Below are positions 3,790-44,646 of a stretch of 54,174 nt of DNA, piece after piece. Within the stretch, counting starts at the first letter, position 1, and every line of letters starts with the position of its first letter. The notes under the pieces are model-generated. The model searched no databases. It worked only from the letters and a program-made list of their open reading frames with translations, and was not told where the DNA came from. Location of the stretch: NCBI GenBank assembly GCA_003427395.1, contig BFEA01000025.1, positions 2,026,676 through 2,080,849 on the forward strand, in the 5' to 3' direction. The DNA is from Chara braunii. Its lineage: Eukaryota; Plantae; Charophyceae. The position numbers were made by a program, and so were the translations under genes.

Positions 3790-4200
3790 TTGTCGATCTG
3801 GCTAGACACGTTCGAGGATCGACTGTAGATTCAGGAGGGCAGCAAGAACAACGAGATGGGGAGCCATCGAGATACCCCAGTCCACCCTACAATGCAATAA
3901 TTTGAAAATGTAGATTTAGAATCACCAAACATTTGAGTAGAGCAGAGGCCCCAGCAAGAACCCTGTATGAAGAACAGGTAACCTGCTTCAAGTTCTCAGG
4001 ATTAACCTCTATCTTATGCTTTGTGAAGCGTTCCCTAACATCCACAGTGTCATCTGCACCATAGGCGCAAAGGAAGTCCAAGTTGCTGAGGGCGAAGGGA
4101 ACCTGTCCTCCAGTTTGGCACTCAGCTGGAGCATGTCACAGGATAATACCTTGACACTCCCTTCGTAGCCCTCCCGCTCAATCAAAGTCCACTCTGCAAA
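3790..4200 (-). pseudogene. Possible highly decayed hAT transposase C-terminal remnant
   Basis: Minus-strand pieces LEDRFPS, DW..PHLV and STVD/ERV (across frameshifts) loosely recall the hAT dimerisation-domain STxxCERxFS motif. Weak. Confidence 0.2.
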
Positions 4201-4872
4201 GAAAACCGAAGGATCTTGTGAGGCAGTTGCCTGCTCAACTTGCTGTGAAACGTTGCCATTGTCCCTCTAGGCCCCTGCCACCTAGTGCCTTCTTCCTCTT
4301 CTACAAAGGCTGCTGCTGCGTCGACCCTGGGGAGGGTGCAAGACCTTGCCTGGGCGCAACCATATTGACGTTTGGAAGAAGGAAGGGTTGCCGAAGGGAC
4401 CAACCCCTCTGGAGGTGGGCAAGCCCCACCAGCGCGGTCGGTTTCCTCTAACAGCATCTTACAGGTGACGAGAGACTGCTGGTTGACAACAGCGCTAGCA
4501 ACACGAACCCGTGACGAGGGAGGGGCGCACGAGAGGCCATAGGCCCCGACATCACCCCCACCTCCACTTCCCCCCCTCTCTCTACCATCTACCTTGTCGC
4601 CACCGCGATCTCTGTCGCCGATGCTATTTCCCTTGTTACCACCGGCTCCACCCCCAAGATCGCCCATCGCCGCCTCCATCTCCCCCGCCGCCGCCATCTC
4701 CCCGCCTACCTCTGCGATCTTTTTCTCTGCCATCGCTCCTGTTACCGCACCCATCATCTCCCTGTTTGTCACCGCCATCTCCCCTATGGCTGCCACCATC
4801 TCCGCCGCAATGTCATCTCCACTGCCATCATCTCCCCCACTGCCGCCACCATCTTCTCCTCTACCGCCATCT

Positions 4873-7562
4873 CCCCCTCTGCCTCCGCCATCTTCCCTGT
4901 TGCCGCCCCCATGATTCAATTACGTAATCGAGTCTCGCTTGCCTCCGATTACGTAATCAAATCGGTTGCGTAATCGAATCAATTATGTAATCGATTCGAT
5001 TACATAATCGAGTCGATTATGCAATCGATTCAATTACGCAATCGAATCGGGTACAGGGAAGGCAGAGGCAGGGGCGATGGCGGCGGTGGGGTTGGAGATG
5101 GCAACAGCGGGGCAGATGTTGGCAGGGGCAAGGGAAGAGGCGGGCGAGGAGAAGATAGCAGCGGTAGGGAAGATAGCGGTGGCGGGGATTCTCGCTGCCA
5201 CCACGATCTTCCTCACCGCTGCTATCTCCCGCTCCACCTCCACCGTTTCCCCCGCCACCATCTCTCCAATCACCTACATAATCTTCCCCGCCGCCAACAT
5301 CTCCCCTTTCGCTCCAGCGTCTCCTGGTCCACCATCTCCCACTTCGCCTCCGCCTTCTCTGCCCCTGCTGCCATGGCAATAGCGGGGCAGATGGCGGAGA
5401 GGAAGATGGCGGAGGAGGAGGGTTAGATGGGAGAGGTGGAGACGCCGGATGCAGAGGGGGAGATGAAAGCAGTGGGGAAGCTGGTGGTGGAGGTGGGGGA
5501 GATGGCAGTGATTGGGGAGATGGAAGCGGCAGGGGAGGTTGGCGGCGGTGGGGGAGGTTGGGGGCAGCGGCGGAGAAGACGGCAGAGATGGCGGAGATGG
5601 CTGCGGCATCTCAATCCCCCCCGCGGCTGCCTCCATTTTCCCTGTCGACACCTCCATCCTCCCTGCCTCCGCCATCTCCCCAACACTACCGCCATTTTCC
5701 CCGTCTCTACCACCATCTTCCTCTCCGCAGCCATCTCCCACTATGCTGCCGTCATCTTCCCTGCCTCCACCATATTTCCGTGTGCCGCCGCCATCCCCCC
5801 CCTTGTCGTCATCTCACCCTTTGCGGCAGCAACGGGGGAGACAGTGGTGGCAGGGGAGATGGTTTGTTTGTGTGTGTGTGTGTCTATGTCATCGCCACAT
5901 GGCTCGACTTTACACCACTGTTCGGAAATGAATCAATTACGTAATCGATTTCAATTTGCAGCAGGCAAAAAAATGCGTGTGTAGAAATGAAATCGATTAT
6001 GTAATCGATTGTATTTCAGCATATGCCAAATAGAATCAATTACGTAATCGATTTTGCTTTTGCACAGGCAGGAAAGGGGGAAAAGAAACTCAAAAAAATC
6101 TGAACAAAATATATGTTGTGCAGCATCCCAATACAAGCAACATTTGCCTGTGCGCCATCCAAAATTTCTCACTCAATCTTAAGGGGGGGGAAAAAACGGA
6201 AAACAAAAAACGCAGGTTTGAGGAGAGGTTTCTCGGACTTTCTCCCTGTCGTTTGTTTTTCGGTTTTTGTTTTTTCCCAGGATTTGAATACAAATTTCGG
6301 GATGGTGCTCAGGCAAATCTTGCTTGCATTGGGACGCTGCACAACAGTTGTTTTTCTCAGATTTTTACACTTTTTTTTTTTTTTTTTTTTTTGCCTGTGC
6401 AAAAATAGAATTGATTACATCGAATTCTATTTGGCATATGCTGAAAAACAATCGATTACATTTCTATGCACGCGTTTTTTGCCTTTTGTGAAAACGAAAT
6501 TGATTACATAATCGATGTCTTTCCGCCACGTGGCGCAAAGCCGGGCCCTGTGGCGATGACATACACACACACACACAGCATCTCCCCCGCCGCTGCCATC
6601 TCCCCCTAAGCCATCTCCCTGATGCCGTCGTGCCATCTCCCCCTCCGCCTCTGCCATTTCCCCCCCCCGCCTCAGCCATCTCCCCCGCCACCTCAGCCAT
6701 CTCCCCTGCTGCCGCCATCTCCCCCGTCGCCACCGCGAAGGGTGAAATGACGGTGGCACCGAGAAAGATGGCCGAGGCAGGGAAGATGACGGGTGTGTAG
6801 GGGGAGATGGCGGTCGAGGGGAAGATGGCGCAGACATGGGGGAAATGGCGGCAGTGTTGGGGAGATGGCGGCGGCGATGGAGGAAATGGAGGCGGCGGCA
6901 GAGGAAACAGAGGCGCCACGGCCATCTCCTCCATCTTTGCCATCCCCCCCTGCAACCATCTTCCCCGCCGCCACCTCCTTCTCCCTCGCCGCCATCCTTC
7001 CCCGCCGCCTCCATCTCCCCAGCCGCTGCCATCTCCCCCGACTCCACCGCCAAGATCCGCCATTTTCCCCACTGCTTCCATCCCCTCCTCTGCCCCCACC
7101 ATCTTCCTCGCTGCCGCCATTTGCCCCGCCACCACTATGGCAGCGGCGGCAGGGAAAATGGTGGAGGCGAATAGGGAGATGGCGGAGGGGGAAACACCGG
7201 AGCAAATGGGGAGATGGTGGCAGCGGCGAAGATGACATAGGTGGAGGGAGGGATGGCGGAGCAGGAGATTGTGGAGGCGGAGCGGGAGATTGTGGTGGCG
7301 GGGAAGATCGTGGCAGCAACAAGGGTTCCCCCTCCCCGCTATCTTTCCCACCACTATTATCTCCTCCTCCGCCGCCGCCATCTCCCCTTCCACTGCGGCC
7401 ATCTACCCGGCCGCTGACATCTCCCCTCCCACCGCCGCCTCTCCCCTATCTCTGCCATCTTCCCCGTAATCAAATCGATTATGTAATCAAACGTAAGAGA
7501 GACTCAATTACGTAACCGAATGATGGGGGCGCCGACAGGGAAGATGGCGGAGGCGGAGGGGG
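4873..7562. mobile_element. ~2.7-kb foldback (long imperfect inverted repeat) built from GCCGCCATCTCCCC and AATCGATTACGTAATCG modules
   Basis: ~5865-6168 is the reverse complement of ~6292-6580, and ~4873-4936 is the reverse complement of ~7498-7562. Centre is ~6230. Confidence 0.8.
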
Positions 7563-10399: not shown

Positions 10400-12750
10400 A
10401 GCTGTATTTTGTTTATCTTTAAGTCTAAATACGGCTATAATGATTGTATGTTGTATTTGGAGGGAAAAAGGTAGTAGGCATTGTTCTGCAGTCGCCCTTG
10501 TCAGTGGGGAAGACTTGTCACAGTATTGGCAGAGCGGTAAGAGTTGGCCTTCTTGCTTCAGGTTTGCCTTGGAGACAAAGCAGTCCGGAGCAGGGAGACG
10601 TCCATAGAGTATTTGTCATTGTAGCGCCTTTTGTGATGTAGGAATAAGGTGGGTGTATCTGGGGCTGCAGTCAAAGGAGTGCAAATCCTGAGGTGTGAGA
10701 GAGGAGTCCTTAGTCCACCTTTGTTTGATGATACCATGACTTTCATAGTTTTCATGGATGGTCCTATATCCATCCTTTACGGTACATTGTTAGAGTTTGA
10801 TTTGCATATCCTTCTTCTTGTTCAGTCAGCTTCATTCGTCAGGGTCAAAGGGGAGTTGGTCGATCAGCGTGTTGCTGCAAAAAGCATACCAACCTTTGTT
10901 GTAGTCTCCAACCACTCAATTTCTCATGAGGCCCTGACCCAGGGTATCCTCTTGACCGAGTCCATCCTTCCATTGCTTATTAACTTGGTCCATCTTACTC
11001 CTAGGAAATGTAGGTCATACGCACGGAGCTCACTTCCCTTTGCTGGCATCTTCTTGAAAATTAATCTAAAAATTTTAAATATCGCACCGGGTAAACTGAG
11101 ATTGGAAGTGGCAGGTCTTTGACAATAACCACCCATGTAACCATTCCAAGGGAACAATATTTAGTAGGCTACATCCCGCATATTATTTGTGCAGTGTTTC
11201 AATTGTTCTTCCTTCTTCCAAAACTCTTCTTTGAAATCTTACAAGTCGCCTAAGGTGAAGATCCCCTTATTCACCTATGAAACTCATTGGACTTATTGTG
11301 GAGGGAGAATGGCATCCTCTTTTGGTTGAGGATAATCGGATTGTCGAAAATGATTGTCTCCACACTTTGAGTCACCGTAGTGGTGGCTTTTGTTATGTAG
11401 GGCTCATCCTACGCTAGAGGCGGATAAAGTTTTTTCAAAGCGGCTCAATGTGTGTATAACGTTTGGTCGCTATAGTAGAGTCGCCCTCCCGTCGTATTGG
11501 GTCTTTCCCTACAACGAGCCAAAAATAGTTTGGTAACTATATATTTTCATGCTTCCCTCTTTAGTCATTTGTTAACCTTCCTGTCACTCTTTCACAAATA
11601 GGCTGTGATGGTTGCCCTTATTGTTTGTAGGTACTTGAAACAATGTGATCAATTACCGCTTTGTACTAGGTTGTTTACGGCCAAGGTCCTTCCCACTAGC
11701 GATGTGTGGAACCCTTTCCATTGCGTCATTCTTTTCAGTGTTATGTCCACCCAAAATTCCCCATAATCATGAGGAGGGCCGAGAGAGGTCAGTCTAACAC
11801 CCAACACCCGGATCCCTTTCTCATTTGGTTTGAATCGATATCATTTTAATTCAGTCACCATCCCTCTATTATGGCACCATAGTTAATTGACATATCAGTG
11901 ACTAAAAAAAAAAAAAAATTATAGTATTTGCCAACATTCTGATTGAGTCCTACAACGCTTTCAGTAGGATCGTAAGATCAATAAATAATAAGGTGACGCG
12001 CATAAGGTATCGGGGAATCTCATAAAATGTCACCCTCTGAATTTCTTGATTCGATTTAATGGTTGTTGCTAAGATCTGCATTACTATGACAAAGATAAGT
12101 GGCGTTATAGGGTCCCCTTGTCTCACCGATCTTTGTAGTGAAAACGGGTGTAAGAGGTGCCCATTTACCATAATGTTCGTCATAGTCGATTGATGCAATA
12201 TAGTCACCTCACCCCCAAAGGTTTGTCTGAAATTCATTCTTTGGATATGAGAATCCACGAAGGCCCAATTTATATCATGGTACATTTTTTTTAAGTGCAC
12301 GAAGATGATTACAGTCGCCAGTCTTCTTCAGGTTCGTCGTGTGTATCGGATTGTCTCTTTGACTAAGGTGGTATAACCTTGAATGTTTCGTTTTAGGATA
12401 AGCCTTGTTTGTTATGGGTGGATGAGTTATTTTATATACGGTAGGAATTTGTTAGTCAGTGTTTTTTTCACCATCTTATACGGTATCAGTAGTAGTGTGA
12501 TTTGTTGGTAATTCTTGATTTCATTTAGTTTCCTTCTTTTGTATGTCAGGGTAGCGACACATTGGTTAAGCAGCCTCCCAAATGCTCTTTCCTTTTGGAC
12601 TGTGTGGATATAGTCCATTATGGAGTCACCCGAAAATTCCGAGAAGTGGGCCCATAACTCCTTTGGAAAGGAGTCAAATATCTGGCTTGGATTTGTAATA
12701 CGACATTATGGATCTCTTGCTTTAAGAGAGGGGCCTCAAGTTTCCCTTGT
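10400..12750 (-). mobile_element. Degenerate L1-clade LINE ORF2 (reverse transcriptase) remnant
   Basis: Minus-strand fragments match L1-type RT motifs: KNYQQITLLLIPYKMVKKTLTNKF (12427-12618) resembles NYRPISLL..YK...K.LANRL. KKMYHDINWAFV and NGHLLHPFSLQRSVRQGDPITPLIFVIVM (11950-12300) resemble KAYD.V.W.F and RQGDPLSP.LF. A CQYC Cys motif near 10520 may be the C-terminal zinc motif. Many stops and frameshifts. Confidence 0.8.
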
Positions 12751-17875: not shown

Positions 17876-20032
17876 GGTCCCACCCCATTTTCTTTTCTTG
17901 CACTTTCATTGAAAAAAAAAGCAGTCGTGAAACTCACAAAAGATGGGGACAAAAAAAAAAACAAAGCTTTGGTCGTGAAATGCAGTTGTATATATTATTG
18001 AAAGTGGTAGTGTGAGTATGCCCTCAATAATGGACTAGAGTGCAATATAAAAATAAACTTTATTCTTTTTGTCGAGCCTTTGGGACCTCCGAACTTTTCG
18101 GGGAAAATGGGAAAACTGCCAACTTTCCCTATTTTCCAACATTAGCGGAGGTTGGTCTAATCCTTTTTTTTTTAATATAGATTTTTTATTTTCGTTTTTT
18201 TTTTTTGGGGGGGGGNGGGGGGCGGGGGGCGCCTACAATAGTTGCCACCAATTTATCGAACATAACCTCCGGGCCTTATAAATGAATATAAGGTTCGTCG
18301 GGCGTTATATTCGTATACAACGTTTGAGCGTTATTTTTGGGTGAAGACGATAGCGCATGTGGCTCATAATGTTTCTGTTATTATGGTTCTTGGTTGATAT
18401 GGAGTAGTTATTTACCCTGTTAGGATGACTAAATGTTGTATATATGTTGCTCCGCTACGTGCCACAGCAACGAACGCCATCACCGGAATAAATCAAGTCC
18501 CCTAATGCATATTGACATATCGTGAGGGCACGGGTGCATAATCCGTAGTTTGTATCTGTGTGAGTGATGAACAAACTTTCATTGTCCAGGTTCAAAAATA
18601 GGAGAGAGGGAAAGAGAGAGAGAGAGAGAGATGCCAGCAAGGCAGCGCGCATTGGCACACGTGCATGCGTGTGTATGATCGTGTGTGTATGTGTGCAATT
18701 GCAAGGGCCGTGTCCACTTCGGCCCAGCCCACCGTTCCAAACTTGCCCGACCACGGATACTTGCCCTTCCCATTCCACCTGGGCCCAGTGCGCCGCCCCC
18801 TCCTACCCAAAATGCCCTTGACACCAAGGTTGGCGTTGAAGTGAACGTTGAAAGTTTCTTGGTGTATAAATGCAACCCTGGCGGGCTGCAATTTGGCCCC
18901 CCTTGAAAAAATGCCAACAACGTTGACGTTGAATGTTGAAAACACTAAGTTCAAGTTGTATAAAATGCAACCCTACGGGCCATGGACAACTATATGTAAC
19001 AAACTGCCTCTGTTAAAAAAAATGCTCTGCCAGCAACGTTAACGTTGAACCTCGAAAACCCTCAGGTATATAAAACATAACCCCACAGGCTGCAAACTTT
19101 CCTAACCAAGGGCACTTACCCTTTCCAGTCCACTTGGGCCTAGTGAGGCCCCCGCCTCCCCTCCACCCCCTCAACCAATATGCCTCAACACCAACGTGGC
19201 GTTGTATTGAATAGTTTCCAGGTGTATAAAATACAACCCTGATGGGCTGTGAACACATCCTTCAGAGGGGCCCTGTTGCTTCCCACTAGCACACTCGAGG
19301 GCAGTCTACTCCTATGAGGTTCCTTCCTGTTAGCCCCTCAACCCCTGAGAAGATTCTGATACCGAAGCACGGTGGCAAGCCTCAATTCTGTTGTTATAGC
19401 AATTTGTTGATTGTTTTTTACGTTGTACTAGTACAATTGATATGCTTTCCACCACCTGACAAGGCTACCACCCAGATAAACTCTCTTAAGGTGATCAGCC
19501 CCCAAAAGAGTCTATGTTTGTTCCCCCTCCACGGACACTCTACTCTTTACGGAAGTCAGACCCCCTAATAGAGAGTCCTCCCTAGTCGTCCCTCCTTAAG
19601 GCAGATCAACTCCCCATAAAACTACGTAGCTCAAAGCGCACTGGCAAGCCTCAAGCTAAGGAAGAATTTTGTCCCTACTAATCCACTCCAGAAAACCTCT
19701 TATTGTTTCCCTTCCAATGACAGTTACCTCCCCTAGAGGGTCCTCCCTGCTAACCCCCCCCCAAGGACACATCAACTATGGCAATCCTCAGCTCTCAATA
19801 CCGCCGCCTCTCCCTTCCGCCTCTCTAGGCACTCAGGGAGGTACAATCCCCCAGCGGGGTGTCAAAATAAAACCAATTGGGAGAGGTGAGGGCGACTGAA
19901 ACCAAACCAACAACCTCTCCCTGACTATGCTAGAGCTCAAACCATCTTAGCTAATACCACATTATATCTGTATGTGTGTGTCTCTGAGTGTGCACGAGTA
20001 TGGACTTTGCAGTCTTCATGACGTCACTGCCA

Positions 20033-23000
20033 TGTGAGCCGACAACTACCAGGATGCATAAGTTATAATGATGCCCGCCAAAGAAATAGAGAATTTGTGT
20101 TCGCAACCCTAATGAGAATCCTGCCTAAAGGGAGGAAAAGGAACCTAGGAAAGAACCGAGAAGGAATTTAGCCTGCTTGGTCCTGAGAAAACAAAGGCAG
20201 TATGATGGAGGTCTCCGTTGGGGTCGTCACACTGCTTGTATGAGCTAACCAAGATGAATGACGGGGTACTCGCCGTACGAAGTTTCCCTGCCATTCGTCC
20301 GGCTAAAGTAACAAACTGATAAAATGTTTGTTTGATTGCGGCGTTGGTGACGAGAGGTTGCCGTGCAGTTCTCTTATTACATTACAGGCTAGGCCATCGA
20401 GTAATCCGGTAGGATCGTCAAGCTGCTTATATAAAAATAACTAAGGCGGATGATAGGGTGCTCGTCGTGCGTGCTATCTTTACCATTCGCCTGACTAAAG
20501 TAGCAAGTTGGTGTATTGATTGTTTGACTTTGACATTGGCGGCAGGAAGGTACCGTGCATCTTACCTATTGACCTGCAGGTTACATTAACAAAAGTCAAA
20601 CTAATCCGGTACTTCCGTGAAGTACATTCCTTCAGTTTAACAAAGTCAAACTGATCTGGTACTTCCGTGAAGTACATTCCTTCAGTTTAACGAAGTCAAA
20701 CTGATCCGGTACTTCCGTGAAGTACATTCCTTTAGTTAACGAAATCAAACCGATCCGGTACTTCCGTGAAGTACATTCCTTCAGTCTAACAAAAGTCGAT
20801 TTGATCCGGTACTTCCGTGAAGTACGTTCCTTCAGTCTAACAAAAGTTGATTTGATCCGGTACTCCCGTGGGGTACACTTTTTTCAAAAGTAATAATAAC
20901 TGATTGATCCGGTACTCCCGTGGGGTGCGCTTCTTCAACTTGACAACGGCCAATTGATCCGGACTCCCGCGGGGTACACTTCTTCAACTTAACAAAAGCC
21001 AATTAATCCAGTGTTCTCGTAGGGTACTCGTCTTCAAAGGCTAACAAAGGCAAAAGATAGCAGGAGGCTTCCGTGAAGCTCTCCTATCACTAATCGAACC
21101 AGACTGGGGAGGGATTCGAGTACTCCCGGGTGAGTGTACGAACTCCTAAGTCCGGGTCGATCTGTCCGACTTCCCGTGGGAGTCACCATGCCTTTTGCTC
21201 ACTTGCGACGCATAGGCCAGATATGTGAACTGTCAGGGCAACTCAATTGAGAGTTGTTTTTGATCTCCTATGCATTGAACTGGTGGTAGGATAGCTCCCG
21301 GGTGGGTTATCCTAACACTTGTTTGATTTGGAGGTCAACTAACGAAAGAAAAAAGTAAGGCAATTATGTTTGAACAAGTGAAAGGATACTCCCGGGTGAG
21401 TAACCTTACGACTTGTTCAAATATGACTAATGGACGATACAAATAAGTACCAAAGCAGGACATGGGAGGCTTCCGTGAGGTCATCCTATTGCTTGCTTGA
21501 GCCTATCTTAGCGAGTCTAATAAAACACTCCAACTAGAGGAGGGTCTGGTGTTTGTCTGAATCCGCTAACACAACCTTAGTTTGTCTGACTTTGAGATAG
21601 TAGTAGGGTGGCTCCCGTAGGGTCATACTGTTTCGCTTTTGAGGGAAAGATTGAGCTTTGATCAAGGAGTAATAGGAGGCTTCCATGAAGAGCACCTATT
21701 ACTAACTTTAATTTTGTATTGACACCTGAATCTAGAAAGTTATCTGAATATTGAGTCAAATGTTGAGACGACTCAACATAGACCTCCTAACTATCTGCTA
21801 ACTTATAAAAGGATACTCTCGGGTGAGTTATCCTGTCACTTGCCCTAGATTGCAGAAATTGCTTGATTGCGTGAGAACTGCATGAATTTTGAAGAGTGAC
21901 TGAGTGCTTTCGTTGGGGCGACTCGACTACTCTTCTGACTAACAGATTGCTTGGAATTGATCAAGTACTCGAGGATTCCTGGGTGAATCGACCTACTACT
22001 TGCGTATGCCAGGACAAGAAAAAGAGAAAGGAAAAAGGAGTTTTCCATCGGGAGCGACTCCAAAGGTTCCTTAAAAGGAACGTAAGAGAAGGCTAATACC
22101 GCGGGGAAAAGGAACTAAAGAAAGAAGACACCCCGTTTAGCCACAGTTCATTGGAGAAACCGCCACTGATTTGAGTCGATCTCGGCCAAGACTACCGCAT
22201 AAAGCACAAAAGGGTGTGTTTATCCGCAAGAGGGAGAATGCAAGGACTGAAAGGAGGGGAAATATGAGTTTCCCTAAAAGACAACTTAGGACATAGGCAA
22301 GAAACTCCTTGAAATAAAAGGAGAAGGAGTGACAGACGACTCAGGGTAGATAGAAACTAGAGGTTAGACTTTGGGATGTTGATCCCAAAGCTCTCAAACC
22401 AGATCTAAGAGTTTGACCCTTTGATATCAATATGTGGGAAGTCGAGTGAGAATGTTGAATCCTTGTTGACCTGTGTGTGTGCATGTCTTTGCTTTGGTCT
22501 ACTGCAATCGAAGGAGAAGTCCTACATAAAGGACTCGATTTTTTGTTATCTCTCGATAACAGGTCGGTCGTTGCCGATTCAACTTTTCCTCCTTTGACTT
22601 GACACCTACATCTAAAGTCAAACCTTGTGGTCAGTAAAACTGTCACCTGTGGTCATTGCCTAAATGGTCATGGTCACTCTCAAGGGTCCTTTGAATCAGT
22701 GTGAGGGGGTTGGGCTTGCATCTCAGGAAAGATAGAGCTGTCATGCATGGTTTGGGGAGTGAGGGACAATGTCAATGGTTGATGGTTGACACCGTTAGTG
22801 CATGGCATGTGAACTGTCTTTGCATTATGTTGTGCATGTCTGTCTTGTGCATGGTTTGGATTGGACTGGAATTGACATCGTGAAGAGTTTTGAACGCTCA
22901 ACACTTGTGAAAGTGGGAAGGGTTCCTTGTGGTAATACCTCGATATTCATTAACAGTCTTATATAACTCCTATGATATCTGATGATCAGTCATACGTTGA

Positions 23001-23471
23001 GTAGAGTAGAATATCCTTTGGTAGTGACAAAGTTTTGTTTTGATGTTTTGAACATAGTGGTCAGAAGGAGAATGTGTCTTTGGAACAGAAGCGGGAATAG
23101 ACGACCGTCTTAAAGTTCGACCTGAATATCTAACGGGTCAGTCCTAGGCGTCTTACTGCGCGTACCCCATATTATGCTACAACGATCTAGCAAACGCCCT
23201 CGGCCGACCTACCTCTACTCAGGCATGTAAAAGCCTTCGCACGTGGGCCGGTAGCTCAGCAGGGATACGGCTACCTGAGGGTGGTGACAGCCCCTCGGGT
23301 AGAGGTAAGTTGTACCTCGCGACATCCCGACCTGTCGCAGGGCGTCGTGAGAGGTATAGCACGCGCGCACGGTTGGAGTGGTGACAAGTTGATTCTTCGA
23401 AAATAAATCCTGCGTGACACGACCATGAGGTTCAGCGCTCCAAGCGGGGTGCGGGACCGCCGCTCGCAACA
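20033..23471 (+). mobile_element. Element A: TG...CA-bounded ~3.4-kb non-coding element (candidate large solo LTR) carrying a hairpin array
   Basis: Starts TGTGAGCCG and ends ...CCGCTCGCAACA. TATATAAAA at 20428. Segments ~22545-22632 and ~23172-23460 are reverse-complement homologues of element B segments ~25195-25292 and ~23860-24175. No TSD, PBS or PPT recognised. Confidence 0.55.
20585..22000 (+). repeat. Hairpin array A (~18 units, loop CCGTG/CCGGGT)
   Basis: GTACTT-CCGTG-AAGTAC at 20609, 20659, 20709, 20758 and 20809 (~50-bp period), then progressively divergent units out to ~21990 that keep the loop and stem complementarity. Confidence 0.85.
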
Positions 23472-23849: not shown

Positions 23850-26800
23850 TGTCGGGCGCATCGGTCCGACACCGCGCGCGGCAGCGCAGGACCCTCTCGG
23901 CCGCGTCACGCAAGAGTTGGATCAACATCGTCACGAACACACAAATGGAGCTTCCTTAGGCTGCTCCGGCCGAGTGCACCAGCCCTACCTCTCGCGAGCC
24001 CCTACGACAGGATAGGGCCTAAGCGAGGCACAACTTACCTCCACCTTACGGGAGTTGTCACCTCCCTTTGGTGGGCGTATCCCCGCCGAGCTACCAGTCC
24101 ACAGTACGAAAGCTACTCGGTTGCAATCGCAGAGGTGGACCAACCGAAGGCGTTTCTCTTTCGCTGTAGCATAGGGGGTACTCGCAGTAATACGCCTATC
24201 GGACCTGCACGGGAACCGGCATCTTGGGGGGCTGAGGTCCCAAGCGAGACTCGTCGTCGGTCGACTAGGACGCATCTCACACACCATGCGCACACCACTC
24301 TACGAACGCGAAAATAAAACACACACACACATATACACGAAACGACACAGCACAAACAATGCGACAACGCTCCTAGCCCCTTAGTAGCCGTCCCATAACT
24401 TCCCGACGCGTGAATCGGATAGGCGTCGCGCGGGAGACTTAGTATAGAGCCGCGCGAACGCAGGGCCAACTCATATCGACTCGCGATGCAAGCGCACGCA
24501 AGCAGTCGCAATGATGGCGTACCGTGTAGTACCCATACTCATGCGGTCCTCGTTTATCTTGAGGGTCGCTTTCGACACTCAAGTGTCGGCTGACACGCGC
24601 CTTGAGGATTAATCTCTCGACGCTGGACAACCGCCATGCGTGGTTGAAGACCACACCTTCTCCTTGTGCAGAGGGGTTGAGTAGACAGCTTTAAGCTGTC
24701 GTGGCGGTCGAACATCAAGGGGTTTGACTTTGACGGCTGCCACGGACTATAACGTCCAACTATAAAAATCTCTAAAAAGTGAAGGGTGAAAAGGGATCTC
24801 CCTTTCTCTCTCGAGCCATAATCTGGCTAACCCTTGCGCACGATCATAATCAGTTGAGCGCATGCCCAAGGCACATATAAATATATACACAAGGCTTATT
24901 TATATAGGACGATCACTTCTCACAGTCACAGTGGGACTCCTCTCAACCATATACACATGTAATCGCAGGCAGTCACATCCAGAGTTCGAACCACAACCAT
25001 ACATGCAGTCACATCAAAGATCAACAAAAGTCCACGCACTACACGGAGTCAACTTCAACCATTCTCTAGGCTAATACCCCTTGCTTTAGCCATACAAACC
25101 TTACTCTTGTGCAACTCCCCAAAATAATTACTCAGTACTTTTGTTAAATGGCCATTCAATAAAGTCCGGGTGAAAACACAATGAAACAATTCAAACCACA
25201 CGGTTAAAGCCTTCAGGTTGAGTGACAAGAGAGGATTGAAGTTGAATCGCAAACCGACGAATCGGCTACCAACCTGTTATCAGTGATAACAGAGGATGAT
25301 CCTCGTAGGATTAGGCTGAAACTAGTCCAAGTCCTGAATTAAAACAGTCAAACGGACCTGTAGCACATGACAGGCCAATCCCAAAGCTAGATTCATAAGT
25401 TCATGGAGAATAATCCTCATATCACGATCCCACTGAAGGATCCTAATTAACTAAGCCTAAGTCTACCCTCAAGCGGTGCCCAAAGCAAAGGTAGACTAAT
25501 GGCAGAATCTCCCCTATTCAGGGTGGATCGCCAGAATCGCCACCTGTCAAAATATAATTTATCTCCTCTAAATTAGAAAAATTTCGGCAGCGCTTCCCGT
25601 AGGAAAAGTGTCTTTTCAAAATTTATATCAGTCCGAATATGAAACCAAAAATAGTCTTTGACTTTCCAAAGTCAAATTTTTGTCTAACTCCATGAATTAG
25701 CAAAACTTTGGGCAGCTTTCCCTTTAGAAAAGGAGACTTTCCAGATTTTTACTAAGTCATATACGAACCTTATACAAGTTGAACTTTGAAAAGTCAGAAA
25801 TTTGATTAACTCCTTGGATTTGCAGAAATTTCGGCAGCGCTTCCCATAAGGAAAGTAGCTTACCAAGATTTATACAAAACCAAGTATAAAACAAGATCTA
25901 AGAAAATGTGAGAACTGATCTAAGCAAAAAAACTGAGCCCAGAAATGCAGAAATTGAGCTAACCCCTATCGCTCTAGCACGTGGCAAGCCTCTAAAGCAA
26001 CTACCTGTCAACTAAAACTGAGACCAAGTAGTAACCTCACTCAGCCACATGCAAGCCAAACCACAAAGGTAAGTACTCTCGTCACCCCAAGTTAATTTAG
26101 CAAACAATAATTCATAGTCTTTCAATTATTTAACCCTTTACTCCCAGCTTACATAGGGCATTGGGATTGGTCATTCATCTTAGAAACAATGTCATCCCTC
26201 TGCCTTAATTTTACACGAACAGGCTGCACAACTACTCTTCTCTTCTTTTTGGCACATGACTAAGCCATTCATCTTAGAAACCAAGCTTAGTCGCCCTGAA
26301 CTGTTTAAATAGCCAAGTTATATATACCTTTCAGCACCTTAGTCTTCAAAGACAGGGCGTAGGGCTGAGCCATTCATCTTAGAAACAATGCCCAACCTGC
26401 CCAGGTTACCTTTAGTTATAACTCTTGATTATACGCTCTTCACTTGTGATAGGGCTATAGTCAGGTCATTCATCTTAGAAACAATGCCTGTCTAGCCTTG
26501 TTCGTATATAAGTACATATATATATCACAGTATAGATAATCATATTCCTTGGTTCTCATTATGGTCCTGATGCCTCAGACTTATACCATTCATCTTAGAA
26601 ACAATGTCTAGTCCTCTGGCCCTGAATCCTCCCTCGAAATAAAACAATCAAGGAGAGATGAGTCATTCATCTTAGAAACAGTGCTCAGCTCCCTCTTTTT
26701 CAGCACACAAAAAAAGAAGAGTCCCCTGGGTCTGACCCAGAGACTGTTCAGAAACCACCCAAGTAAACAGCGGCCAGACCATTCATCTTAGAAACAATGT

Positions 26801-28515
26801 CTGGCCCTCAAAAGTCAAGCAAGCAATACCCCTCAGAAATAAGTAGCCAGGCCATTCATCTTAGAAACAATGTCTGGCACAATTAGAGAAACACAACAAC
26901 CAAGCCATTCATCTTAGAAACGATGCTTGGTCCTTCAGAAAACAAAACAAAACATAACAGTTAGGCCATTGATTTTAAAAACAATGGCTGACTCTATAAG
27001 ACCCGTTCAATCGCAGGCAAAACCGCCTTCCTGCCAACCTTTCCCCTGATGCAACCCCTTGTGACAATCTGCTTTCAGACAAACAAGAAACTGAAACTCC
27101 CTTTTATACAAACATTCATTTACTTAGCCTGATTTGTGTTCTAAAAGTCAATCCAAAGTCAAAGTAGGGTTGCATGCAATACAGTCAACCAATACACAGG
27201 GACGTGTATAGATAAGGGTTATACTGGGTTTAATAAGGGAAACCAATAGTTACCTCTGAGTTCCCTGTCTCCAGAACTCCTCCTGAGTTCCGGCAGAGCT
27301 CCCGCAATCGGTGGGGCAACCTCCCACAGAGGCCTTGGCGCGGATTACGGGTTGCAATCCCGCCTGCCGCCTTCCTCTCAGAACCAATAGACCAGACTTA
27401 GAGGAAGAAGGGCAGAGGGAGAAATTTTGAGTCTCTCAGATCCAAGAAGGGTGCTCTCAGACTCGCAGGACAGGGCCTCGATGTCTTCGCTCGCCTAAGG
27501 GCCCCGCAATGGTGGCTAAACGGTCAACAATTTTGTCAACCCATGGTGTAATAGCGCTCTGACAGTCCTCTAAGTCGCAGCAACACCCCTTTTCCTCCTT
27601 GTAGAGTCTGATTACTTCCCCAAGTTATGGCACTACACCTACTAATCAGCAGGCCGCCGTTCTCCCAGAGCGCGCAACACTTCAAATAGGATCCGTCCCT
27701 TATGGAGGGCACAACAAACCTTACGGAAAAAGCAACGCAAGGCAACTATGCACACCAGCAAGGCACCGTGGAGCGCGACAACAACCATGGTAACCCTGCC
27801 AGGCGGATGAACCTCCTGCAGCAGTCCACAGCAGCTAGCCAATAAGGCCGTAGCGATGGTCAACAACCATCAGCGGCAGCAGCCTGCTGAAGCAGCCAAT
27901 ACGAGCGGTAGTTGAACGGCGGTGACGCCGCCACAAGTTCAATCACAACGGCGAGCCCTCCTCTCCTGAGTTCGCAGGCTAATCTCGTTGCTAACCGCCT
28001 TTTTGCCTCCGAACGATGGTCAAAGCAGCGCAGCAGCCCACAGGTAAGGCTTCAATCACATCCCCAACTTCCTGTTGTTCTATGCATCGGGGTAAGCGGC
28101 ACTCCGGCCAACCAGAAACATGCCCATAGCTCCGTTGCCAGCCTCCCGTTGTTTCGACTGTTGGCCAATCTCCCAGCCCTGGGGGCTATCCCCTCATTGC
28201 TCTCGTGGCCAACGGTGACTCTTCAGCCCCACAGCCTGGCTTCTCCTTTGAGGTAGGTACTCATGTTTTACGGCCCTTCCACCACCTCCCCGTTCTTTTT
28301 CCCTTGCTACTTTTTTTTCACTCCTCCACAGTCCCGGAGCTATGACCTTAGGTAGAATCCGACGTCACCGACTCAGAAAACACGCTTCCCTCCCGTATTC
28401 TCTCTTACTTATAGTCTCCTTCTCCCTCTCTCTATACGATCTCTAGTGGTCAAACACCCGGTCTTACTCTCGGCCAGGTTCAACCCGAAGTGAACCCCGG
28501 AGTAAAGCGCTCACA
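23850..28515 (-). mobile_element. Element B: TG...CA-bounded ~4.7-kb non-coding element (candidate large solo LTR) carrying a hairpin array
   Basis: The minus strand starts TGTGAGCGC (28515) and ends GCGCCCGACA (23850), forming short imperfect terminal inverted repeats. Minus-strand TATAAAA at 27102-27108. Collinear and inverted relative to element A. Segment 23850-25685 is repeated at 33663-35560. Confidence 0.6.
26155..26995. repeat. Hairpin array B (10 units of CATTCATCTTAGAAACAATG with unique self-complementary flanks)
   Basis: Core starts at 26172, 26266, 26371, 26467, 26587, 26664, 26780, 26853, 26906 and 26967 (last one degenerate). Intervening sequences are non-identical. Confidence 0.92.
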
Positions 28516-31094
28516 CGGAGTAACCGAGGGTGATGAAAAGGCACTATCCTGAACGGCTGCGTGAGGACGACGGGCAACCCTTCTTCCGTGCCCATAAAAG
28601 AAAGGGGAAAACGTGCAAAACTAAAAATTCAGAAAAGGAAAAAAACAATAAAGAGGCATCCAAGAGTGAATCTTCCGCAAAAAAAAAAACCGGAAGAGTT
28701 CATCGTTGCGCTGCCTTTCTCTGTGCGCAGCCCCTACACACCCCGACACCAAGTTTGCTACCCTCCTTCGAACCCGCTTTCACCAATCGAATTAGCAGGA
28801 CCGAATGAAACTTTAACGCGAAACCGGCCAGGTGCGTGCCCCCTTTTCCCTGCGCCTAGCCCCCTCTCCGCCACGTGCATCTGACACTCTTTTTTGTCCA
28901 GATTCACTTCCTATTCTAATTCCAAATCTACTAACTTTCTTTCAAATCCACCTCCACTACTCACTTCGCCCTGCCTATAAACCCATATCTACTATCCTTC
29001 CCCGACTGGTCCCGTCCAGAATCAACTAACACCTTTGACTTTCTCACTCCTTCTTCCCTGCTTCCTACCATAGCTCCGCGCACTAACCTTTCGTCCTTAC
29101 TCCTCACCTACTGATCTACTGCTAAAACTAACCCCGGATTAAGTGTCGCCCGGGCCTAAAACCTTGGACTAACATTTTATCCCACCCGAATCCATCGAGA
29201 ATCGGGCAAGTTATGCTCGTTTCTCTCTTCTTCTCCAACCTCGTTCACGCCATCTCCGCGCAGTCCTTCCTCCTTCTATCTTCTATTCTACTAACCCTTC
29301 ACTCAAGCTTACTACATAGTTGGAATCGCTATGTCAAGAAACCCTTACCCAGCAGTCTTCCCCGCCCGAGCCCAACGAAAGACGAGCGAGTTGCGGGTTC
29401 TCCCTCCCGCCATATCTCCATACCCCGCGCTGCTTCGTTCTCACTAACCTCTAATCCCGCTAACCCATCGCCGAATCTAACCACGGATTCGGATTCGCTG
29501 GCCCGGAAAACCCCTATAACCACCCTCCATTCGTCCGACTTCGTGAAGGATGGAGCGAATTGTCTATTTGTGGTTGCGCCCGACTCCCCGCTCCGCCATC
29601 TCCAGTCGCGTATGTACCTGGCGCTCAGACTCGTCTGGGTTCATCCCTTCTATGTGTGCTCACCGACTGCTCTGGCCGCTCCGCCCCTCCTTCCGCTGCG
29701 TCTGCCCCGTTGCCTTAGCACCCCCGTATTCTCTTACCTCCTTTCTCTTCCACCCCCAACCACCTCCGTCTCTCCCTACTCCGAATGCACCCGGAGTGCT
29801 AACCCGTCCGGGTTCACTCCACTCTTATCCCCCACTACTACTAGCTCAGCACTCGGTAGTAGCCCCTCCCCCACAGCTCTCTGGCATCGACTGTCCGGCC
29901 TGCTGCTTGGTTGCCCCGGCCCGCTGCTGTAGATCAACCGCCGTCACTCAGCGTCACCCGATCAGTCTCGCTGCCCTGTCGCTCTCCCGCTAGTACTCAT
30001 TGCCTGCTGCCTGTTGCCTCCGCTGCTCGTTTTCCCCGCCCCAACACCCATCACTTAGCTGTCTTCGGCAATCAAGTGCACCCGATACGCACCCGTGCCC
30101 AGGTTCCCCTTACCTCCACTGCTGCCTCTCCACCTCATCTCCCCGTCGTCTGTTTCCACTGCCCCTTTTCTCCCGGTTACTCAGCGCCCGACAACAGCGG
30201 GCTCATCAGCCGTACGGGCTGTTTGGCAGCGCCTACTTCCCTACGCGGTATTTTCGGAGGAGGCTAGTTGCTGAATGATCCGGTTAGCTACTTCAAGTTG
30301 CCCCTGCACCTCTGCCCGACAGGCAGCTCGCGGGCCAGCCCCGCCATGGACCTCCACTGGCGTCCTATATGTATGGTCCGGCCGCGCAGGGGCCTTGCTA
30401 ATCTTCTATGTATCGCTCCGAATTTTTACAGGCGCCCCAAGGAACTGGCTCACGCGCACGTTGGCTTCGTCGGCCCGCATCTTAAAGGGGTGGGGCCAAG
30501 GACCCTCACCGATCATGAGGAAGTGCGAACGGGTTCGCGCACTCGAGGTCCTCGACTTCCGCGGCGGCCGCTAAGTCTGGCATTGCGTCCATACCAACGG
30601 GGCGGCGGGACAACGGCAAATAATAAGAAGAAGACAATAACTTATTAAAAGTTTTTAATCGTCGGAACATGTCAACTGAAAGAAAAGGAAACGCTAGCAC
30701 CGTTCTGACGCCGCCGTCGGCAGAAGACCAAGCGGAATAGCCGTCGGGCCTCCGATTCCTCAGTCCCTTCGCACTGCCTTGATAATTTCGCTCGTCGTCA
30801 CTTGATCTCGATCCCTGAACGCCTCGGATGAAAATCCAACGCCGTAACCAATACTGCCAGGCCCGAGTCTGGGCCTAGCTCTGGCGGACGCCTTAATAAA
30901 CGGACACTGCGCGGCGCGCCAGGCTACCGAAACGCCTTCAAAAGTCACTTTGTTGTCGACGTCGTCCTCCGCACGTACGCACAGGTCACAGGCGAGCACA
31001 TTCATCAACGAGACGTAATTCTTTTAATCCCTATTTAATCAGACGGAAAAAAATTTGGCCGGCGGTGACACCGACTCTCCAATCATCAACAAAT

Positions 31095-33662: not shown

Positions 33663-35993
33663 TATCGAGCGCATCGGTCCGGCACCGCACAAAACGGGGA
33701 GGACCCTCCCGACCACGTCACATAGGATTCGGTCTGATCCTCATCGAGATATATACATGGAGCTTCCGCAAACCGCTCCGCCCGAGTGCGCCGGCCATAC
33801 CTCTCGCGAGCCCCTACGACAGGATAGGGCCTACGCGAGGCACGACTTACCTCCACCTTACGGGAGTTGTCACCTCCCTTTAGTGGGCGTATTTTTTTCG
33901 AGCTACCAGTCCACAATACGAAAGCTAATCAATTTTAATCGCACCAGTCGAGGGCGTTTCTCGTTCGCTGTAGCATAGGGGGTACGCACAATTTTACGCC
34001 TCTATCGGACCCGCACGCGAACCGGCGCCTTGGGGGGCTGAGGTCCCAAGCGCGACTCGTCATTGATTGACTAGGACGAATCCCACACACCACGCGTACA
34101 CCACTCTAAAGACATAAAAATTAGAACACGCACGTGCACGCATATATACAGAACGACACAAAACAAACAACGCGACAACACTCCTAGTCCCTTAGTAGTC
34201 ATCCCATAACTCTTCGATGCGGAAATCGGATAAGCGATGCGCGTGAGACTTAGTATAAAACCGAGCGGACGCAGAGCCTTCCCATATCGACTAGCAATGT
34301 ATGAATGTGCAAGCAGTCGTGATGATGGTGTACTATGTAGTGTCCATAATCAAGCGGTCCCTCGTGGGTTTGAGTACCGCTTATGACACTCAAGTGTCAA
34401 ACTCGAAATATCGTGAGGGTCTACCCCTTCACGATATTGCACGGCTGAAGGAACAGTCGTACGGTCTCCACGGCACCTCCGACTTTTAGGCTGAGTGTCC
34501 CGGTGGGCAGGGTAAATAGGCTTTGCGAGGGAGGTGATCCCTTCCATGCAGAGTCTAGGACATGGGATGTCTTGGACAAGGACCTCGAATCCAGGCCCAG
34601 GACTAACGTCCGACTAAGAAATCTCTTTAAGAAGCATACAACAAATAAAGAGGGTTTTTCTCCCTTTCGCAATCTCGACCCCAATTAAACCCTTAAGCGT
34701 GGGTCCCTCAGGCCACGCGAACACCGAAACATAGGTATATACATGTACATACGTAAAAGGGGAATAAGTATGTGACGATTACTTCTCACAATCACAGTGA
34801 GACTCCTTACAACCATATATATGTACGTGATCGTAGACAATCAAATCCAAAGTCCGAACCACAAAACATATCTGCAATCACATCAAAGAGTCAACCAGAA
34901 GTCCACACATTACATGGAGTCAAATTGAACCATTCTCTATACTCATATTCATCGCCCTAGCCATGCAAGCCCTAGCCTCTGTCCAATCTTTCATAATTAA
35001 ATACTCAGTACCTTTGTTAAATGACCATTCAATAAAAGTCCGGGTGAAAACCTTAATAAAATAATAAAACCCACCAGGGCTAAAAGCTTTTAGGTTGAGT
35101 ATTGAGGATGAATTGGAGTTAAGTCGTAGACCGACGAATCGGCAACCAATCTATTATCAGTGATAACAGAAGATGATCCTCATGGGATCAAGCATAATCT
35201 ATTTAAAATCTTGAATCAAACGATCAAGAGGACATGTAACACAGGACATGACAATCCCCAAACTAAATCTGTAAGTCCATTGAGAATAATCTCCATATCA
35301 CAATCTCACTCAAGGTTCTCCTGCAAACTAAGTCTAAGCCTACCTCTAAGCCAGTATCCAACGCAATGTAGACCTATGGCAGCATCTCCCCTATTCAGGG
35401 TGGATTGTCAGAACAGCCACCTGTCAAAATACATGTTAACTTCCTTAAACTATGAAAATTTAGGCAACACTTCCCATAGAAAAAATGTCTTCTCATAATT
35501 TATACTAACTCAAAGATAAAAACAAAAACAATCTTTAAATTTGGAAAGTCAAATTTTGTCTATGCCTCTATCGGACCTGCACGCAAACCGGCGCCTCAGG
35601 GGGATGAGGTCTCAAACTCGACTCGTCGTCGGTCGACTAGGACGAATCCCACACACCACGCGTACACCCTATGCTACAACGAACGAGAAACGCCCTCGGC
35701 TGGTCCACCTCTGCGATTGCAACTGATTAACTTTGGTACTATGGACTGGTAGCTCGGCGGGGATACGCCCACCGAAGGGAGGTGACAACTCCCGTAAGGT
35801 GGAGGCAAGTCGTGCCTCGCGTAGGCCCTATCCTGTCGTAGGGGCTCACGAGAGGTATGGCTGGCACACTCGGCCGGAGCGGCTTGTGGAAGCTCCATGT
35901 ATATATCGCGATGAGGATCAGACCGACTCCTGCGTAACGAGGCCGGGAGGGTCCCGCCCCATTTTGTGCGGTGCCGGACCGATGCGCTCAATA
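33663..35993 (-). mobile_element. Element C: truncated and rearranged copy of the element B family
   Basis: 33663-35560 aligns in direct orientation with 23850-25685. 35561-35668 repeats ~33997-34100. 35669-35993 is an inverted copy of the terminal ~320 bp. Confidence 0.7.
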
Positions 35994-39846: not shown

Positions 39847-40504
<658 letters not shown>

Positions 40505-40514
40505 GTAAGTCCCT

Positions 40515-41325
40515 AACCTTCTCTTAACCCATTTACTTAACCATGTTGTACGCGTAACCCATTTTCTTAACCATGTTGTACTCGTTACGCATTTACTTAA
40601 ACCGCCAGTACCCCAGGGGGTCTTAGACCCCCTCTGGGTAGGCTCTGAGGCAAATGCATATGGACCTGCGCGGCGCACCGATTTTAGTCACCGCGTTAAC
40701 GGCCTAATAACGTGGAGGTACTGGTGGTTTAAACCATGTTGTACTCGTAACCCATTTACTTTAACCGTGCTTGCTGTACTGGACCTTGTTTGCTCTTTTT
40801 TTTTTTTTTTTTTTTTTTTTGACACATTGCTGTGGCGCTTTTCTGCAGCAGTGCAATACAGAGGCAACGCTTGAGGGGTCAGGTAAGTTAAAGTTTACCC
40901 GGCTGACCCCCGCCGTGGGTGAGGGAAAAAGAAAATTGATGTCATGTGGGCCCGAGGTGGATGGACCACAGATCAGATAAAATCAGGTTGTACTTAAACC
41001 CACCTGCTTAACCATGTTGTACTTAACCCATTTACGTCACGTAACTATGTTGCAATCAATCCATTTGCTTAACCATGATGTACTTAACCATGGTGTACCT
41101 AACTGTGATGTACTTAACCATGCTGTACTTAATTATCATGTACTTAACTCTGGTCTACCAGACCATGATGTACTTAAAACCATGGTGTACTTAGTCATGT
41201 TTAGTCATGGTGTACTTAACTATCATGTACTTAGTCATGGTGTACTTAACTATCATGTAGTTAATCATGGTGTACTTAACTATCGTGTACTTCAGCATCT
41301 GGTTAGTCATGGTGTACTCAGCCAT
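40515..41325 (+). repeat. Intronic minisatellites (~33-bp TAACCCATTTACTTAACCATGTTGTACTCG-like and 15-bp CATGGTGTACTTAAC-like units)
   Basis: Visible tandem units at 40515-40770 and 41005-41325. Confidence 0.85.
40601..40728. mobile_element. TTAA-flanked MITE inserted in a minisatellite
   Basis: TTAA|ACCGCCAGTACC...GGTACTGGTGGT|TTAA interrupts the TTAACCATGTTGTA repeat. Related termini occur at 8118-8500 and ~10267. Confidence 0.7.
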
Positions 41326-42109
41326 TATTATGGAGAAGCGCAAACAGCCGCTTTTGGAAATCCATGGTGTATCAATACTGCTACGTCGATACACACTACG
41401 AATACAATATGCTTTTTTTTTTTTTTTGGATGATATGTACATGGACAATCTGTATGCCTAAATACATGTCTGTTCGCGCATAGACACATTCACGCGCCGG
41501 TGATCGCTCAAATTTAGATATTCGGCATGTAGGAATCTTCCTTGACATATCGTAGCAGTACGAGACACTAGACGATAATAATAGTAATAAATTATTAATT
41601 AATAAACTAAGAATAATACTAATAAAATATAAATTAATAAATATAAACAATTACATTTATCAAAAAATAAAAATAAATTACAGCAATTCTATGGTAATCA
41701 TAATGTAACTACATAGTTTTTTTTTTTTTTTTTTTTAAATTTTAACTACATAGTTTTGTGTGTGGGTTTATAACGCTAAGTGTGTTTGGAAGATGGGGGG
41801 CCAGCCCGGGATGAGGGGCATAGATTATATACATCAGTAGTTCGCAAAAGAAAAGTCTGTCTGCAGCCCGCGTCTGATCGAGAGCGCAGCCTCTCTGATC
41901 AGTCCGGTGGGTGATTGGTAGGTTGGCCTAACTACCGGTGATTTCTGGCAAACAGAGCTGCTGCATTCCTTTTTTTTTTTTTTTTTTTTCCCTCAAGTTT
42001 GAAATGACCGCCTCCTGTTCTTTCTTTGATTGTGTTCTCTCTGTTTTTCCCCTTGTGTTTCTCTCTCATTTACAGGCATTGCACACTGTACTTATTTCCA
42101 GTAGTAATA

Positions 42110-42536
42110 CGTCTGATATCATGTGACAGTATATATGTATAAATATATCGTCAAACAGAAGTGGCCGGTAAAACGTAGGCAGAGAAGGAGAAGAGGACAA
42201 CAAACGAGCGGCTGTGACAAACACAATTAGTATGTATACGAATTATTTTTTCTTGTTTTCTTCTGTTTTTTTCGCCTTTGCGCTCTGATATTCATGTGAC
42301 AATATATATGCCTTCTGGCTGTGTGCAAGTGGGTCGATATGACACACGGGGATGGGGGGCAGCCGCCGCTCAACCTACATCCACGTGGGCGGCCTTGTAC
42401 GCAAGAGGAGGTTCTGAACAGGGGGAGTTGTAAGGAAGAAGATTAAAAATGAACTGATATCTTTTTTGTTTTCCTTTGTTTTTTTCGCTTTTGCGCTCTG
42501 ATATTTATGTGATGATATATATCGTCAAACAGATAG

Positions 42537-42577
<41 letters not shown>

Positions 42578-44640: not shown

Positions 44641-44646
44641 TAAATA

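Follow-up and report, generated by a model that had tools for sequence, protein, structure and literature searches.

The stretch analyzed here, called the window below, comprises 54,174 nucleotides of Chara braunii (contig BFEA01000025.1, positions 2,026,676 to 2,080,849 of the forward strand) and is marked by long dinucleotide microsatellites, runs of N and very few open reading frames (ORFs). Between 20196 and 22002 of the window, a search by apical motif gathered about 25 hairpins of one family in 1.8 kb, all on the + strand. The motif, C-CG(GG)U-G, is common to the nine units of a tandem array (U1-U9) and to about 16 further hairpins with different stems. The presence of a strand-specific hairpin field with a young tandem block within it is real and statistically supported. 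As substitutions in the field keep pairing on one strand only, the locus suggests a repeat-built structured RNA. The 5' part of the field is laid out as follows, R1 being a covariance model built from the 25 hairpins.

20196 to 20400, + strand: block X1, first copy of a ~190-bp block (X1/X2 alignment; folds, z -1.8 and -4.0; R1 matches)
20401 to 20590, + strand: block X2, second copy (X1/X2 alignment, folds, R1 matches), containing a TATA-like run
20428 to 20439, + strand: TATA-like A/T run inside X2; its X1 counterpart, TGTAT-GAGC, is non-TATA
20586 to 20836, + strand: units U1-U5, young, 82-94% alike, with spacer YTAACAAAAG and stems ACTGA/TCAGT and GTACTTC/GAAGTAC
20837 to 21040, + strand: units U6-U9, older, 62-78% alike, with a 1-nt deletion in U8

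The 50-bp period of the array was taken from Tandem Repeats Finder, which reports 5.8 copies at 89% (20586-20877), stretching to 9.0 copies at 79% (20586-21037). Each of the nine units (20586-21040) consists of the linker YTAACAAAAG and a 7-bp hairpin (inner stem GTACTTC/GAAGTAC, triloop CGU) enclosed by a 4-bp outer stem (ACTGA/TCAGT). A first-pass annotation of this DNA had described the first five units as near-identical, and they are: from U1 to U9 the identities between neighbors run 0.94, 0.92, 0.92, 0.84, 0.78, 0.76, 0.77 and 0.69, with the young block spanning 0.94-0.84. The 18-mer hairpin core, GGTACTTCCGTGAAGTAC, occurs in five exact copies and once with three mismatches, on the + strand only, where 0.03 would be expected from shuffled sequence. 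The described shift to a GTACTC...GGGTAC stem with a TTGA/TCAA outer stem is likewise seen in U6-U8, as GTACTCC-CGT-GGGGTAC. Polarity within the nine units is real. When the unit tree was compared with position, as that annotation had proposed, the tree followed position, and identity fell with distance along the array (r = -0.57, permutation p = 0.0013). The maximum-likelihood tree places (U7,U8,U9) apart from (U1-U6) with support of 96/98, the branches of U1-U5 being very short.

Divergence between the units respects the fold. RNAalifold, unprompted, recovered the 4-bp outer and 7-bp inner stems from U1-U9 with three pairs compensated, and all one-sided changes in the inner stem are to G.U. 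In U6-U9 the inner-stem changes include a compensated U-A to C-G, a U-A to U.G and, in U9, a C-G to U-A. One outer-stem pair can be followed from neighbor to neighbor along a path from C-G (U1-U4) through U.G (U5) to U-A (U6). In U1-U5 the 17-nt hairpin is invariant, and the 13 variable columns are all found among the other 34 (Fisher p = 0.002).

With head-to-tail copies of a unit between 10 and 100 bp, U1-U9 is also a minisatellite. The main rival explanation gives the field no function: it would be a repeat or the relic of a transposon, a quasi-palindromic minisatellite amplified in situ, in which pairing has been kept through shared descent, template switching and a mutation bias linked to transcription or replication, with no selection on an RNA. 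The tandem structure with its three periodicities is what a relic would show, whereas the invariance of the hairpin core in U1-U5, where the flanks vary, argues against one.

The array does not mark the beginning of the field. The first-pass annotation had the array start at 20585, with a TATA box at its promoter end; the field begins at about 20196. Five diverged family hairpins (centers 20218, 20275, 20363, 20466 and 20555) lie 5' of the array in the two duplicated ~190-bp blocks. Three are in X1 (20196-20236, 20253-20299 and 20347-20380) and two in X2 (20452-20478 and 20538-20574), a block whose first hairpin has lost its 5' arm. The TATA-like run is accordingly internal to the field, with three hairpins upstream of it. 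Just upstream of the field, at 18728-19255 (+), are four diverged tandem units; each has motifs of the AACGTTGA type, a GTATAAAAT box and a small CCC-loop-GGG hairpin, and the units are possibly repeated promoter-like modules.

Beyond U9 the hairpins quoted in the first-pass annotation (near 21056, 21287, 21370, 21668 and 21810) are each present, along with others.

21056 to 21088, + strand: distal hairpin of type T1 (GGAGGCTTC-CGT-GAAGC), z -2.8, 84% identical to 21674-21705
21111 to 21147, + strand: distal T2-like hairpin (CTC-CCGGGT-GAG), weak alone (z -0.3 in wider context)
21168 to 21184, + strand: distal triloop hairpin GACTTCC-CGT-GGGAGTC, found by hairpin and descriptor searches
21260 to 21338, + strand: three-tier 79-nt hairpin with a T2 core at 21287-21314, -36.5 kcal/mol, z -5.2, none of 200 shuffles as stable
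21364 to 21426, + strand: 63-nt hairpin of ~26 bp with a T2 core at 21382-21407, -28.2 kcal/mol, z -6.1
21453 to 21498, + strand: T1 hairpin with an extended lower stem and four G.U pairs, z -2.75, -15.6 kcal/mol on the + strand versus -4.6 on the - strand
21602 to 21632, + strand: hairpin GGTGGCTC-CCGTA-GGGTCATAC, from the hairpin search and an R1 match
21664 to 21708, + strand: T1 hairpin, z -3.3, its triloop CAU (CpG to CpA) and its lower stem 9 bp long
21810 to 21834, + strand: T2 hairpin (CTC-TCGGGT-GAG), from the hairpin search and blastn
21891 to 21935, + strand: hairpin with apex CTTTCGTTGGGG and five G.U pairs, z -3.0
21962 to 22002, + strand: last and weakest member (ATTC-CTGGGT-GAAT), z +0.35, doubtful alone

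The distal hairpins do not continue the gradient of the array. A steady grading into diverged hairpins had been proposed; no monotonic decay is seen past U9, and the hairpins fall instead into sub-families, T1 (GGAGGCTTC-CGT-GAAGC at 21073, 21475 and 21685) and T2 (GGATACTC-CCGGGT-GAGT at 21129, 21301, 21395, 21822 and 21982), with pairwise blastn matches at 84%, 73% and 70%. The existence of T1 and T2 implies that blocks of several hairpins were duplicated. A hierarchy of duplications is therefore present, comprising the 190-bp blocks, the 50-bp units and older multi-hairpin blocks. Given the diverged hairpins upstream and the internal position of the TATA-like run, the homogeneous units reflect local amplification rather than growth from a promoter end. 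The idea that units duplicate and then diverge under structural constraint is thus borne out by the tree and the stem changes, while addition at the promoter end is not supported, diverged hairpins flanking the young block to the left as well as to the right. Most simply, the hairpin field is old and a single unit of it was amplified four or five times in the recent past.

How far the family extends was assessed in more than one way. On neither strand of the remaining 52 kb does R1 give a comparable match (next best E 0.7), a restriction that is circular as evidence. Because of that circularity a stem-independent descriptor was used, consisting of a YRN triloop, a C-G closing pair, two more Y-R pairs and at least three of four lower pairs. 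It matches 14 times on the + strand of the window, 11 of them inside 20180-22020, and six times on the - strand, against 0.2 in shuffles of the region. Three of the matches fall off the tandem array, where 0.1 would be expected (Poisson p = 1.8e-4). The pentamer YTAAC, part of the unit linker, reaches 8 per kb in the field compared with about 1 elsewhere, on the + strand only. Further along, in the 0.6 kb at 28900-29500 (+), which are pyrimidine-rich, (A)CTAAC occurs nine times, again on the + strand only; it is the same pentamer as in the field linkers.

The most telling result for structural constraint is a strand test. In the inner six pairs of the family G.U outnumbers A.C by 26 to 3, and among the 16 non-array hairpins alone by 19 to 3 (binomial p = 0.002 versus the compositional expectation). 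As an internal control, mis-registered outer columns of the same 16 hairpins give 14 to 13 (Fisher p = 0.011). Together with the compensated pairs found by RNAalifold, these counts uphold the claim that substitutions are largely compensatory or G-U on the + strand. Pairing in the model-based alignment A3 reaches 71% of cells, compared with 62.6% after shuffling, and the covariation score is 0.421 versus 0.258; none of 500 shuffles reaches either value, and all slid controls score at most 0.19. Fold energies point to the same strand. The distal kilobase folds to -316 kcal/mol on the + strand and -280 on the - strand (z -5.1 and -4.8), the + strand being better by 36, and z for the array is -4.9 on the + strand against -2.9 on the - strand. 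Of the 25 hairpins, 23 retain the loop CpG despite a regional CpG observed/expected ratio of 0.62-0.85; the two exceptions, CA and TG, are deamination products.

For a relic, these observations cut both ways. Template switching during replication can both create and maintain perfect stems in one event, and it could repair quasi-palindromes (PMC8794818). The slight G+T excess on the + strand at 21-22 kb, with TpG exceeding CpA, is compatible with some strand bias. However, template switching yields Watson-Crick stems, and here G.U makes up roughly a quarter of the paired cells and A.C almost none. Composition or mutation bias alone cannot give 19 to 3 when the control columns are unbiased at 14 to 13. 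Moreover, the loop motif persists on stems that have no common sequence. The repeat-rich surroundings, with inverted-repeat elements and a reverse transcriptase (RT) fragment, fit a relic, as does the failure to find relatives anywhere in the viral, metagenome and prokaryote collections searched. Taken together, we consider a functionless relic rather doubtful, though the strongest competitor to an RNA.

Given constraint on the fold of one strand, an RNA of the + strand is the most economical reading. Under it, 20196-22002 would be the DNA of a non-coding transcript or of an untranslated portion of one. There is no ORF of at least 90 aa between 19 and 22.3 kb, and Pfam gives no family above threshold in the same interval. 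At gathering thresholds no Rfam family matches anywhere in the window, and a search of 18-28 kb at E<=1 returns only a chance miRNA match. A tRNA scan gave none. The scan for bacterial promoters and terminators was uninformative, and the tool is meant for another kind of organism. Convincing primer-binding sites of long terminal repeat (LTR) elements are absent, and the only flanking direct repeat of the 1.8-kb field is a 22-nt purine-rich match.

In sequence collections, the T2 hairpin has no match among viral contigs, and a two-hairpin pattern has none in metagenome, prokaryote-genome or viral contigs. A looser pattern, CTTCCGTGAAG twice, hit 68 metagenome loci, none homologous; nearly all are bacterial coding repeats (e.g. 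of the peptide D-A-F-R-E-A) or unrelated tandem repeats. An AT-rich metagenome contig, OCZT010109401.1, is unrelated and has, at positions 760-1190, a 181-bp tandem repeat of three hairpins per unit, all framed AAATGGTA-stem-loop-stem-TATTT and with the loop TTCCGTGAA on two different stems. It is a separate hairpin array, probably bacterial or phage.

The two long distal hairpins raise the possibility that the transcript is a small-RNA precursor cluster, in which Dicer-like cuts of the longer distal hairpins would give microRNA (miRNA)-like or small interfering RNAs, with the short young units as raw material. The hairpins at 21260-21338 (79 nt, z -5.2) and 21364-21426 (63 nt, ~26 bp, z -6.1) are precursor-like, and the chance Rfam match is to a plant miRNA family (20243-20307, - strand, E 0.33), weak and sub-threshold. 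The conserved part of the family is, however, the loop with its closing pairs and not an arm, the opposite of what miRNA families show. Dicer would need longer stems than the 11-15 bp of most members or the 7+4 bp of the young units. Only two of the 25 reach a duplex of ~21 bp or more, and all Rfam miRNA families score below threshold. We give small RNAs a slim chance.

Strand-specific folding could also belong to DNA. The hairpins may act in single-stranded DNA, where a rolling-circle (Helitron-like) or other mobile element could use them as its repeated ends or as an origin-like signal; hairpins of DNA likewise tolerate G.T pairs, and the + strand enrichment of YTAAC (8 versus ~1 per kb) would fit. 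A Helitron 3' end has a hairpin ~10 nt before a terminal CTRR, with a 5' TC and a Rep/helicase in the family. In U5-U6 CTAA follows the hairpin by 11 nt, which we take to fit that CTRR. The distance from hairpin to CTAAC varies in the distal hairpins, though, and the window has no Rep/helicase ORF or other transposase. No second copy lies within the 54 kb, and no terminal structure was found. A single-stranded DNA role is very improbable.

Least credible is an array of palindromic sites in duplex DNA for a dimeric transcription factor, such as a repeat in an enhancer or promoter. In the window the core TTCCGTGAA, which reads as a TTC-N3-GAA palindrome, occurs seven times, always in the field. 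Yet the half-sites are not conserved, the stems being replaced by unrelated complementary sequences, and an asymmetry of G.T over A.C is meaningless in duplex DNA. Both the covariation and the strand asymmetry contradict sites of this kind, which are scarcely to be considered.

A conserved apex on stems that are free to change is characteristic of sites recognized by their shape. We therefore tentatively favor a multivalent protein-binding RNA, that is, a + strand transcript presenting many copies of a stem-loop. Transcription, the protein partner and any function of the field are inferred here from the DNA. Such an RNA would display about 25 copies of one short kind of stem-loop. At the apex of each, a C-G pair would close either a CGU (Y-R-Y) triloop or a CCGGGU hexaloop, followed by two or three pyrimidine-purine pairs and below these a stem of any sequence. 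The many copies could act as a multivalent platform on which an RNA-binding protein lands, recognizing the loop and the shape of the stem rather than its sequence. The partner protein might employ this RNA in scaffolding, in sequestration or in the control of decay. The field grows through local tandem duplication, and the copies drift apart under selection that retains the stem and the apical motif.

Several points weigh against a protein-binding RNA. All the sequences are paralogous copies at one locus, so that events are few and relatedness inflates the shuffle tests. The hairpins were gathered via the loop motif, and part of the loop conservation is thereby built into the set. A model trained on U1-U9 alone (R2) does not recover the distal hairpins significantly (E 0.5-8.6), so that their kinship to the units depends on the apex they have in common, on the YTAAC linker and on blastn alignments that are weak. 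Individual 41-nt windows are modestly stable (mean z -1.3), and two family members are no better than shuffles in fold energy. Other repeats and transposon-like inverted repeats abound in the neighborhood of the field. Palindromic repeats in tandem are frequent, and most have no function.

A second array of hairpins, B, lies at 26165-26990 (hairpins 26172-26986), with ten hairpins in + orientation only and an irregular spacing of 53-120 nt. Its 20-nt apex, CATTCATCTTAGAAACAATG, is nearly invariant and forms a 12-nt loop with a small upper stem and a bulged C, on stems that are wholly different; the fold energies of B do not tell which strand folds. The field (A) and B have no common polarity, the most similar and most closely spaced units of B being at its opposite, right end. 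The two show no homology beyond an 18-nt motif. AAGATGAATGAC (20251-20262, in block X1) is the exact complement of GTCATTCATCTT at 26170-26181, 26465-26476 and 26662-26673, the 5' edge of three B hairpins, with the loop and the stem base preceding it; this 12-nt link between A and B has a BLAST E of 14 and is not significant. The loop 20-mer of B has two matches among viral contigs, without hairpin context and consistent with chance.

It is conceivable, if unlikely, that A and B belong to an undescribed algal or plant class of non-coding RNA, either as separate genes or as domains of a single long + strand transcript, in which arrays of one shape-read stem-loop would make up the whole molecule. 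A would carry Roquin-like triloops and B a 12-nt loop on variable stems, with birth and death of units in both. If so, one locus would show the whole path from fresh duplicates to covarying hairpins. If the field is transcribed, it would be a natural, non-animal case of an RNA gaining valency through duplication of a protein-binding stem-loop, with all unit ages side by side, and the birth of repeat-built structured RNAs, the route supposed for Xist repeat A and NORAD, could be studied directly. The match of U1-U5 to the Roquin consensus would then raise the question of a triloop-reading protein in this lineage. If it is not transcribed, the field is a caution that paralogous palindromic repeats can mimic covariation.

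The rest of the window is largely repetitive. A segment of ~1.8 kb occurs twice (23852-25686 versus 33665-35562, 77-79% identity), and GC-rich inverted repeats of ~330 bp (33663-33987 versus 35660-35993, 87%) bound an element of ~2.3 kb. A second inverted pair, 23145-23356 versus 23986-24198, adjoins array B. The duplicated segment with its inverted repeats looks like a non-autonomous element with terminal inverted repeats and has no ORF matching Pfam. The RT fragment is at 11953-12300 on the - strand. Many short repeats resembling miniature inverted-repeat transposable elements lie at 42100-53800 in both orientations (e.g. 44713-44828, 48584-48703 and 51212-51336), and some repeats of this type have a T-run and then a G-run (18182-18226 and 48431-48475). 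At 4180-7560, GC-rich 21-bp repeats form an inverted duplication (5061-5794 versus 6747-7456, 73%); translated, they would give low-complexity peptides rich in Gly/Asp or in Pro, and ORFs overlap on both strands.

A first exon of an HDAC1/RPD3-type deacetylase is present at 39974-40516 (+). Its 180 aa are 70% identical to human HDAC1 (PDB); the nearest named relatives are land-plant HDACs at ~76%, and the best match overall, at 84%, is to freshwater-looking metagenome contigs. As the one gene of the window that can be placed, it makes a green-lineage source, an alga or plant relative, probable though not certain. Those contigs have only the exon in common with the window and contain no R1 matches. 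The exon is preceded by (AG)62 (39850-39974) and followed by an apparent intron (40525-41292) with a 15/30-bp minisatellite; a motif search found no later HDAC exons.

Among known systems, arrays of clustered regularly interspaced short palindromic repeats (CRISPR) resemble the field only in the idea of an age gradient along an array. A CRISPR-type array was rejected, as the repeats diverge, the linkers are homologous, members lie on both sides of the young block and the genome is eukaryotic. Minisatellites and the tandem repeats of transposons share the 50-bp period, the nine copies and a homogeneous block grading into degenerate copies. Ordinary minisatellites, however, are without strand-specific substitutions that preserve G.U or a motif kept on unrelated stems.

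The apex of the family recalls the constitutive decay element (CDE) of Roquin, a single hairpin read by its shape, with a YRY/YRN triloop on a 6-8-bp stem, Y-R pairs at the top and a 3' purine stack (PMC6294493). U1-U5 fit the consensus exactly, with its YRY triloop, three Y-R pairs and stem length; together with 21073 and 21685 they match TTCYRYGAA exactly, and these seven are the only matches in the window. A YRN triloop on a 6-8-bp stem is found in 11 hairpins of 20180-22020, and the top Y-R pairs of the TNF-type consensus are seen in nearly all rows (columns 17-20 C/U, 24-28 G/A). The stem is less CDE-like. G.U pairs weaken CDEs (PMC6294493), and where a CDE has a Watson-Crick stem, the 16 non-array hairpins have 19 G.U and U6-U9 have seven, with none in U1-U5. 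CDEs are also single or paired in animal 3' untranslated regions, whereas about 25 hairpins occur here without an upstream ORF. To our knowledge, no Roquin has been described in a plant-like lineage. The Smaug/Vts1 recognition element (SRE) has a CNGGN0-4 loop on a non-specific stem (PMC4053848). The CCGGGU/CUGGGU hexaloops at 21129, 21301, 21395 and 21982 fit that loop, while the CGU triloops of the majority do not. The proteins that bind SREs have been described in fungi and animals, and we see no more than a resemblance here. Both likenesses would at most be analogies of mechanism and not membership.

Tandem hairpin units also serve as modules of long non-coding RNAs in the NORAD repeat units and the roX stem-loops. 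In the A-repeat of Xist, 7.5-8.5 tandem short hairpin cores are separated by low-complexity linkers, structure matters more than stem sequence, and the repeat is thought to be a platform for protein multimerization (PMC5742192). There is no sequence similarity to it and no Rfam match, the loop here is CGU or CCGGGU and not an AUCG tetraloop, and the host is not a mammal. The units described here also sit in a larger field of diverged hairpins. In architecture the Xist A-repeat is the closest of the known systems, with nine units of ~50 nt here, each joining a 17-37-nt hairpin to the A-rich linker YTAACAAAAG.

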